The position numbers were made by a program, and so were the translations under genes. Below, piece by piece: positions 36,211 through 36,450 of a DNA stretch of 64,000 bases. Where the stretch lies: the sequence record PP712906.1; one strand, given 5' to 3'. Within the stretch, counting starts at the first letter, position 1. Each line of letters begins with the position of its first letter. Below the pieces are notes generated by a model. That model worked only from the letters and a program-made list of their open reading frames with translations, was not told the DNA's origin and did no database searches.

Positions 36211-36450
36211 TGGCGCCGCTCGTGTGAATCGAACACACGTCAAACACAACACCCCGTCCACCCAATTAGAGTTTCGAAGTAAGAGCTAATCAGCATTTCG
36301 GAGCAATCGAGCGTTATTTCTACGAGTGAGCTTTCGACAACTCACACGCACTTTCTACTCGGTCCCAGTGATTCGGTACCAACGCAGGTTGCGAACCTAC
36401 GTCTGCACTAATGTTGGGAAAACACTGCGTATTGTACACCAGTTAGCGGC
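36211..36450 (-). ncRNA. 240-nt RNA with tRNA-like termini (tmRNA-like architecture)
   Basis: GCCGCU/AGCGGC acceptor, GAC-GUGUG-UUCGAUU-CACAC T arm, GCCA 3' end, structured interior. Confidence 0.7.

Follow-up and report, generated by a model that had tools for sequence, protein, structure and literature searches.

The locus

The window considered here is a stretch of 64,000 nucleotides (nt) from sequence record PP712906.1 and represents a KVP40-like T4-type Vibrio phage. KVP40 is reportedly a reference T4-type phage, sequenced in 2003. ARAGORN identifies 28 transfer RNAs (tRNAs) in the window, all encoded on the minus strand between 29.1 and 36.8 kb. Within this cluster, and on the same strand, an unannotated gap at 36211-36450 contains a 240-nt element that is the subject of this analysis. 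Comparison with its relatives establishes, far beyond chance, that the element belongs to a real structured RNA family, and it probably encodes a stable non-coding RNA that uses a tRNA as its scaffold. With a 501-base-pair (bp) query taken around the element, blastn retrieves Vibrio phage TCU-VP03-AIR1 at 100% identity and KVP40 at 96.8%. The counterpart lies between ORF204 and ORF205 in the former and in an unannotated 216-bp gap between KVP40.0317 and KVP40.0318 in the latter. In every record inspected, the element is either a blank gap or is covered by a spurious small open reading frame (ORF). Rfam at its gathering thresholds reports tRNAs only in the window, and no Rfam family matches the element.

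The RNA encoded by the minus strand reads 5'-GCCGCU A ACUGGUGUA ... UUUG AC GUGUG UUCGAUU CACAC G AGCGGC G CCA-3'. RNA position 1 is window position 36450, and a window coordinate equals 36451 minus the RNA position. From the 5' to the 3' end, the gene is composed of the following parts:

36211..36450, minus strand: whole RNA gene, 240 nt; homologues of 239-244 nt in 49 Vibrio phage records
36445..36450 (RNA 1-6), minus strand: 5' strand of the acceptor stem, GCCGCU; pairs with RNA 231-236, 66 of 66 alignment cells paired, 4 of 6 pairs with compensatory changes
36435..36444 (RNA 7-16), minus strand: D-loop-like single strand; G11, G12 and G14 invariant, no D stem
36422..36434 (RNA 17-29, U20 bulged), minus strand: 5' strand of helix P2; pairs with RNA 199-210, 99 of 99 cells
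36363..36419 (RNA 32-88), minus strand: P3 domain; closing helix UCCCA/UGGGA, invariant internal loop ACAUUA / GAAUCAC, variable hairpin
36308..36361 (RNA 90-143), minus strand: P4 domain; 4-bp helix P4a CGAG/CUCG, A-rich internal loop AGAAAG / AGAAAUAA, hairpin P4
36301..36303 (RNA 148-150), minus strand: 5' strand of P6, CUC; partner RNA 196-198 (window 36253-36255), stacked on P2, 33 of 33 cells paired
36262..36293 (RNA 158-189; 158-165 with 182-189), minus strand: P5 hairpin; 8-bp stem CUGAUUAG/CUAAUUGG
36241..36252 (RNA 199-210), minus strand: 3' strand of P2, GUGUUGUGUUUG, followed by the 2-nt linker AC at 36239-36240
36222..36238 (RNA 213-229), minus strand: T arm GUGUG-UUCGAUU-CACAC, 5-bp stem and 7-nt loop
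36211..36220 (RNA 231-236, 237 and 238-240), minus strand: 3' strand of the acceptor, AGCGGC, discriminator G237 and CCA, all encoded

Comparative evidence for the fold

The fold of the single sequence beats those of shuffled sequences by a modest margin only (z = -2.39), so the case rests on comparative evidence. The homologues used are those of KVP40, phi-pp2, ValKK3, VH7D, D482, F86, QD01, VS1, nt-1 and 1.081.O, together with one European Nucleotide Archive (ENA) metagenome scaffold. The alignment contains 12 sequences from about seven lineages, and pair counts were made over 11 of them. The structure model was derived from alignments, from RNAalifold and from an all-versus-all scan for co-varying stacks, while the pairing counts were controlled by sliding the 3' partners by 1-2 columns. 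A covariance model, R1, was built from the family alignment.

Compensatory changes are found in 38 of the 58 helix pairs. Pairing is complete (100% of cells) in P1, P2, P5 and P6 and reaches 86-95% in P3, P3b, P4a and P4; in the slid-partner control, pairing falls to 21-56% in every covarying helix. As these changes affect the acceptor, the T stem, P2 and four interior helices, they identify a genuine structured RNA.

The two ends of the RNA form a tRNA-like module. The acceptor helix occurs across lineages as GCCGCU/AGCGGC, GCCGCC/GGCGGC, GGCGGG/CCCGCC and GCCCGC/GUGGGC. G:U wobbles are confined to 2:71 (VS1 and nt-1), 5:68 (1.081.O) and 6:67 (the L035 metagenome sequence), and C3-G70 is invariant in 12 of 12 sequences. 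The T stem has 5 bp in 10 of 11 sequences and 4 bp in F86, with the variants GUGUG, CGUGG, AAGGG, GGGAG and AGAGG, and its loop is conserved as UUCGAKU. The GG of the D-loop-like strand would contact this loop, making a tRNA elbow. Neither an anticodon arm nor a D arm is present, and P2 stands where the anticodon stem would be. When R1 is run on ordinary tRNAs, they align over its whole length except for the interior, which is treated as a deletion (13-18 bits); this supports the tRNA-like nature of the acceptor-T module. The trinucleotide AUG at positions -2 to +1 is invariant, so that A-U precedes G1 in all sequences and position -1 is always U. At the 3' extremity, the discriminator is G, A or C, and it is followed by CCA in the KVP40 and ValKK3 groups only, the other five of the seven lineages having ACA or AC. 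By comparison, all tRNAs of the window encode CCA, as do 31 of 31 tRNAs checked in four of the five CCA-less lineages.

P2 comprises 12 bp and is 100% paired in the 11 sequences. Four of its nine core pairs show compensatory changes, from A-U to U-A or G-C, in the QD01/nt-1 group and in 1.081.O. The closing helix of P3 is found as CCCA/UGGG, CCGA/UCGG or CUCG/CGAG, and 10 of the 12 pairs of its distal hairpin are compensatory. The same holds for all four pairs of P4a (CGAG/CUCG, UUGU/ACAA, GAGU/GCUC) and for 9 of the 11 pairs of P4. P5 is paired in 88 of 88 cells, with two compensatory pairs and additional one-sided changes, while the CUC/GAG of P6 becomes AUC/GAU in F86, the QD01 group and 1.081.O. 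A local hairpin and a loop pairing proposed by RNAalifold in the 3' part of the core display no covariation and were replaced by P5 and P6.

While the stems co-vary, the loops and junctions of the core are invariant: GAAUCAC, ACAUUA, GUCGAA, CUCUUACUUCGAAAC and the A-rich internal loop. The P4 loop GUCGAA (window 36333-36338) is identical in 12 of 12 sequences, and UUCGAAAC is likewise an invariant loop sequence. The P5 loop is 16 nt long and nearly invariant (CUCUUACUUCGAAACU), and it includes a T-loop-like UUCGAAA. A kissing interaction between the two hairpins is possible, the UCGAA of the P4 loop being complementary to the UUCGA of the P5 loop; both segments are invariant and hence give no covariation signal.

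Several of these features had been noticed in a first-pass annotation made from the letters of the window, and most of its structural reading stands. The acceptor GCCGCU/AGCGGC is present as a 6-bp helix and the T arm is as it had been drawn. C3-G70 and G73 are both present in the window copy, the long helix proposed to join the two ends is P2, and its internal hairpins correspond to P3, P4, P4a and P5, which have covariation support. Some details need amendment. The annotation names no strand; the element is on the minus strand, as are all 28 tRNAs. The encoded GCCA end exists in the window, but CCA is limited to the KVP40 and ValKK3 groups. The GAC proposed as a linker before the T arm is present as a sequence, but its G forms the last pair of P2, which leaves a linker of 2 nt; the trinucleotide is GAC, GAA or GUA among the relatives.

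Distribution and conservation

The same annotation named a lack of conservation in relatives among the points that would refute it; this is excluded, as homologues are found by blastn in 49 phage records, all of T4-type Vibrio phages of the genera Schizotequatrovirus or Mylasvirus. Searches seeded with three divergent members return the same 49 records each time. For the D48x group, the blastn matches cover essentially the element alone (positions 96-358 of the 501-bp query). R1 gives family members 217-263 bits and ordinary tRNAs at most 18 bits. Pattern and protein scans of IMG/VR yield KVP40 and VH7D and otherwise chance matches, and the JGI metagenomes and GTDB genomes yield chance motif matches only. 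On these sequence searches, the family does not seem to extend beyond Schizotequatrovirus, Mylasvirus and their close relatives. In four of seven relatives (ValKK3, D482, F86 and 1.081.O), conservation is higher in the element than in the adjoining coding DNA. The suggestion of a new class of tRNA-like RNA is thus borne out to the extent that a conserved, covarying RNA with a tmRNA-style tRNA-like domain (tmRNA, transfer-messenger RNA) has no match among Rfam families.

Genomic neighbourhood

The element is tightly packed between small ORFs, which flank it within 1-3 nt. The features that surround it are:

36454..36684, minus strand: upstream ORF of 76 amino acids (aa); stop codon 3 nt before the RNA 5' end; PHROG 18680, function unknown
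35676..36210, minus strand: downstream KVP40.0317-family gene, 173 aa; Shine-Dalgarno (SD) sequence AGAGGA at 36205-36210 right after the CCA, start codon at 36195-36197
36715..36743, minus strand: sigma-70-like promoter match TTGACA-17-TAGTAT upstream of the unit, from a consensus scan only
35009-35029, minus strand: terminator-like hairpin downstream of the unit, from a consensus scan only

The candidate promoter and terminator bracket three small ORFs, the element and a 113-nt tRNA-like gene; being consensus matches only, they are not evidence of function. The SD sequence directly follows the acceptor end in every aligned lineage. The next ORF is a homologue of KVP40.0317 in KVP40, ValKK3, F86, QD01 and 1.081.O, while D482 and nt-1 have an extra small ORF ahead of it. 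The 173-aa protein corresponds to PHROG 15953, of unknown function, and its AlphaFold model is confident (predicted local distance difference test score, pLDDT, of 84.7). It was considered as an SmpB-like protein and rejected as such on the same searches that are given below, and it is unrelated to T4 Trna.2 and Trna.3, of which it had been considered a possible relative.

Comparison with known RNAs

The element can be grouped with two known kinds of RNA: non-coding RNAs with a tRNA-like domain, and stable RNAs encoded in the tRNA clusters of phages. T4 RNAC and RNAD have been known for decades and have no assigned role. T4 species 1 RNA (rnaC), one of the two small stable RNAs encoded in the T4 tRNA cluster, is the closest in design. 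Like the element, it lies inside a T4-type tRNA cluster, on the tRNA strand, in the syntenic region downstream of 57B/acb1, and it has an acceptor-like helix beside a T arm (CCGGG-UUCGAAU-CCCGG) around a non-tRNA interior. It is shorter, however (139 nt versus 240 nt), and its interior consists of two hairpins instead of a P2-closed multi-helix core. At the T4 locus (L020), nhmmer --max and R1 match ordinary tRNAs only and not rnaC at L020:1909-2047. The two RNAs are therefore presented as analogous in design and genomic context, by comparison of their layouts, with homology not detectable. PMC3014915 gives the role of species 1 RNA as unknown.

YrlA RNAs (RF02553) are non-coding RNAs with an embedded tRNA-like module comprising a T arm and acceptor- and D-like elements, and some are encoded by phages (PMC4201824). 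The module of YrlA lies inside the RNA, whose ends make up the Ro60-binding stem; the arrangement is reversed in the element, where the ends form the acceptor. Neither in the window nor in the relatives does the YrlA model detect the element; its only hits, weak and sub-threshold, are to the long tRNA-like genes nearby.

The element also follows the principle of engineered tRNA scaffolds, in which a folded RNA of foreign origin replaces the anticodon arm and the cell processes and stabilises the product like a tRNA. Unlike these constructs, it also dispenses with the D arm, and it is natural and conserved. The tRNA-like structures of plant viruses are located at genome 3' ends and are aminoacylated; aminoacylation of this kind is unlikely for the element.

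Apart from tmRNA, very few natural RNAs share its plan, an acceptor-T module formed by the ends around a large conserved core. As an unannotated gene of a reference phage, it provides a second, covariation-rich handle on the role of the non-tRNA stable RNAs found in T4-type tRNA clusters. Some family members infect Vibrio natriegens, a non-pathogenic laboratory host that grows fast, which makes the system experimentally tractable. The alignment and R1 could seed an Rfam family, and phage annotations that read the RNA gene as a protein can be corrected.

A tRNA-scaffolded RNA as the best explanation

The reading that accounts best for the data, and that is probably correct, is that the element specifies a stable, structured non-coding RNA on a tRNA scaffold, of which the core would be the functional part and the tRNA-like end a handle for RNase P processing and stability. 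The RNA would be co-transcribed with the neighbouring small ORFs and tRNA-like genes in transcripts of the tRNA cluster. The sequence shows that its two ends fold into the 6-bp acceptor helix stacked on the 5-bp T arm, with the invariant GG and neither D nor anticodon arm. Following established rules of tRNA processing, host RNase P would cut before G1, next to the conserved U at -1, and the 3' end would be trimmed at the discriminator, the CCA being either encoded or added; the mature ends would be set in this way. Such processing would free the RNA from a polycistronic transcript and stabilise it, as in a natural tRNA scaffold. The tRNA-like ends, together with the processing rules, are what suggest that the module acts as a handle. 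P2, which by covariation replaces the anticodon stem, carries the core of about 170 nt with its four helices P3, P4, P5 and P6, and this core most likely offers a surface that binds a protein or another RNA. T4 rnaC, a tRNA-cluster RNA that closes with an acceptor-like helix and a T arm, provides a precedent.

Several points weigh against this explanation. The alignment samples about seven lineages of one phage group, and several of the compensatory changes may each go back to one inherited event. The element has diverged beyond the adjacent gene in QD01 and nt-1 (66% versus 72-78% DNA identity to the window), a reversal that suggests mosaic exchange within the region. The conserved spacing of 1-3 nt to the SD sequence of the next gene could indicate a cis-acting 5' leader instead. 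For the 173-aa product of that gene, no Pfam family and no Foldseek match in the PDB at E <= 0.001 were found. Finally, a full-text literature search retrieved neither a description of the element nor a transcriptome for these phages.

Alternative explanations

One possibility, unlikely as stated though the best placed of the alternatives, is that the RNA acts as a decoy or sponge: a host or phage factor that recognises the tRNA shape would bind the acceptor-T elbow and be held, inhibited or redirected by the core. Candidates are SmpB, EF-Tu, RNase P, the CCA-adding enzyme, a modification enzyme and a defence nuclease that targets tRNAs. The survival of the tRNA-like module through complete turnover of its stem sequences fits such a role, as do the core loops, which are invariant as binding surfaces would be, and the accessory and anti-defence neighbourhood, with an Acb1 homologue 2.5 kb away and a large tRNA cluster. 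However, an RNA devoid of an anticodon arm cannot be a decoy for anticodon nucleases, and the version involving SmpB has no positive evidence. The decoy is moreover a sub-case of the tRNA-scaffolded RNA, with which it overlaps, rather than an alternative to it.

A broader and more speculative proposal, somewhat less likely again, is that the family represents a new class of phage non-coding RNA in which a tmRNA-style domain brings a conserved effector core to the machinery that recognises the tRNA shape, for translation takeover or counter-defence. The target would be the ribosomal A site (together with SmpB or EF-Tu), RNase P, or a defence nuclease directed at tRNAs. If this were true, the tmRNA design would have been put to another purpose through a second invention or borrowing, and T4 species 1 RNA would exemplify the same strategy.

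It is improbable that the element is purely a cis-acting 5' leader of the KVP40.0317-family gene, a folded RNA that would remain part of the mRNA and act by providing a protected 5' end after RNase P cleavage or by controlling access to the SD sequence. The position of the SD sequence right after the acceptor end in every aligned lineage speaks for this explanation, even with the small extra gene that comes next in D482 and nt-1; but packing is tight throughout T4-type genomes, so that close spacing is weak evidence. The CUCUU of the P5 loop is complementary to the AAGAG of the SD sequence, yet it is changed to CUCUG in F86 while the SD sequence shows no compensating change. A distant relative of the 173-aa protein (42% identity, contig L031) is preceded by a T-arm-like hairpin, GGGGC-A-UCA and then AGAGGAAAUU. 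This upstream region, however, is not a family member: R1 scores 4.9 bits, on the T loop, and the fold z-score is -0.56. A further homologue of the protein, in L023, has no such RNA upstream.

To note, distant homologues of the 173-aa protein with 42-45% identity, found in Logan and ENA contigs, are preceded by other structures. At L031:780-870 (+), the T-arm-like hairpin and GGGGC-A-UCA are followed by the same SD sequence, AGAGGAAAUU, as in the family. At L032:1230-1440 (+), a region of about 215 nt is closed by GUGGGG/CCCCAC and has no T arm. By R1, neither structure belongs to the family.

One of the three readings offered in the first-pass annotation was a variant ribosome-rescue RNA, here taken as a divergent tmRNA or a tmRNA-like rescue or hijacking RNA with non-alanine charging, SmpB-mediated entry into stalled ribosomes and a short tag. 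This is very unlikely. The resemblance in layout is real: both RNAs have an acceptor and a T arm, no D stem, a GG at the D-loop position and, where a tRNA has its anticodon stem, a long P2 separated from the T arm by 2-3 nt. The length of the element is within the small-tmRNA range, the T loop UUCGAUU fits the tmRNA consensus, and the window encodes GCCA and the short frame ARLLRNAD*. Beyond layout, the comparison fails. ARAGORN, one of the checks proposed, finds no tmRNA in the window. The Rfam tmRNA models RF00023, RF01849, RF01850 and RF01851 give no gathering-score hit on the element, the nearest being a weak beta_tmRNA match to the T arm (14.8 bits, E = 0.044, versus a gathering score of 84); on five relatives they give nothing on the element at E cut-offs up to 10. 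The pseudoknot series PK1-PK4 is not found. The alanine identity pair G3:U70 is replaced by the invariant C3-G70, and neither A73 nor CCA is conserved, the tail being ACA or AC in five of seven lineages, although the 31 tRNAs checked in four of these five all encode CCA. The ARLLRNAD* frame exists in the window but is restricted to the KVP40 subgroup. ValKK3 and VH7D shorten it to ARLL*, and elsewhere the phase differs or the frame stays open for 23-33 codons; no other frame, resume codon or stop is conserved. Changes in the 'coding' hairpin P4 are paired on both strands and are not synonymous codon changes. With the detectors, the alanine identity elements and the tag frame all failing, identity as a tmRNA is rejected. 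By its sequence the RNA is not translated. The unencoded CCA and the drifting discriminator argue against a conserved aminoacylation identity, and the RNA is probably not aminoacylated, although CCA could still be added after transcription.

The element is not a canonical cloverleaf tRNA either, being called by neither ARAGORN nor Rfam RF00005. That it could be an intron-interrupted tRNA gene or a decayed tRNA pseudogene, with an interior that has no function of its own, is extremely improbable. Such an origin would agree with its location in the tRNA cluster and with the presence, in the same genomes, of 110-124-nt tRNA-like genes with insertions in the tRNA body. Removal of the interior, however, would leave about 16 + 30 nt, lacking both the D and the anticodon arm, from which no tRNA is possible. 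The proposed check with Rfam intron models gave no family match even at an E cut-off of 10, and the sequences offer nothing in favour of the interior as a spliced intron. Neutral decay is ruled out because conservation is highest in the interior, where compensatory changes are also seen.

The least credible reading, a small protein-coding region as annotated (VPHD482_0399, VPHF86_0308, QD01_344 and the N-terminal extension of the ENA protein P0005), can draw on open frames of 30-45 codons on both strands and on a peptide-like stretch, MLISSYFETLIG, that looks conserved, but it may be set aside, since this stretch is frame-shifted by a 1-nt insertion in F86, the annotated frames differ in strand and phase among genomes, variable columns (45/57/44 over the three codon phases) show no 3-nt periodicity, and substitutions are compensatory in helices.

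Annotated proteins overlie the RNA gene at L003:2471-2587 (+) in D482, at L004:2657-2761 and at the N-terminus of the L004:2012-2629 coding sequence in F86, at L005:2656-2787 in QD01, and in residues 1-38 of P0005, which form the N-terminal extension of this metagenomic homologue of the 173-aa protein. These hypothetical products are translations of the RNA gene and probably annotation artefacts.

Other features of the tRNA cluster

At window 39003-39455 (-), a gene annotated as 'RNA ligase / 57B' encodes a homologue of Acb1, the phosphodiesterase directed against the cyclic oligonucleotide-based antiphage signalling system (CBASS), with a Pfam PF23474 match of 157.9 bits. By this match, the cluster of tRNAs and odd RNAs adjoins an anti-defence gene, as in T4. 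An unannotated stretch between a homing endonuclease gene and acb1, at window 38502-38603 (-), shows a weak partial match (14 bits versus a gathering score of 47, E = 0.0042 in a 1.7-kb search) to positions 191-290 of the Rfam tmRNA model, which belong to its interior; the match is probably due to chance.

Long tRNA genes of 110-124 nt occur three or four per phage and are conserved across all lineages. Examples are window 35558-35670 (-) and L001:1956-2071, 3622-3745 and 3756-3868, and genes of 110-123 nt are also present in D482 (L003), F86 (L004), QD01 (L005), nt-1 (L024), L026 and L031. Their acceptor, D arm and T arm are complete, an insert of 40-55 nt is located in the region of the anticodon arm, and they score above threshold with the Rfam tRNA model (47-58 bits). 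In KVP40 they are labelled tRNA-Pseudo-3, -4 and -5. In the Pseudo-3 type, the hairpin of the insert shows a compensatory change (GAUACUGACAAGUAUC versus GAUUCUGACAAGAAUC) and an anticodon-like loop, CUGUUAA, is conserved. From their sequences, these genes look like functional tRNA-scaffolded RNAs and not like pseudogenes. Pseudo-4 and Pseudo-5 are absent from the window, in which 22 nt of flank alone matches; their place is taken, at window 37224-37892 (-), by an ORF for a GIY-YIG / SegE-like homing endonuclease.

Two further RNA features were noted on the minus strand of the window. Rfam identifies a tRNA at 31598-31669 (-) (44.9 bits) that ARAGORN misses. A 47-nt minihelix at 27887-27933 (-) is composed of an acceptor and a T arm, GGGAGAU...AUGGG-UUCGAUU-CCCGU-GUCUCCC, with no D or anticodon arm, and scores 11.9 bits with R1; it may be what is left of a tRNA-Ser-like gene, or a further minimal tRNA-like element.

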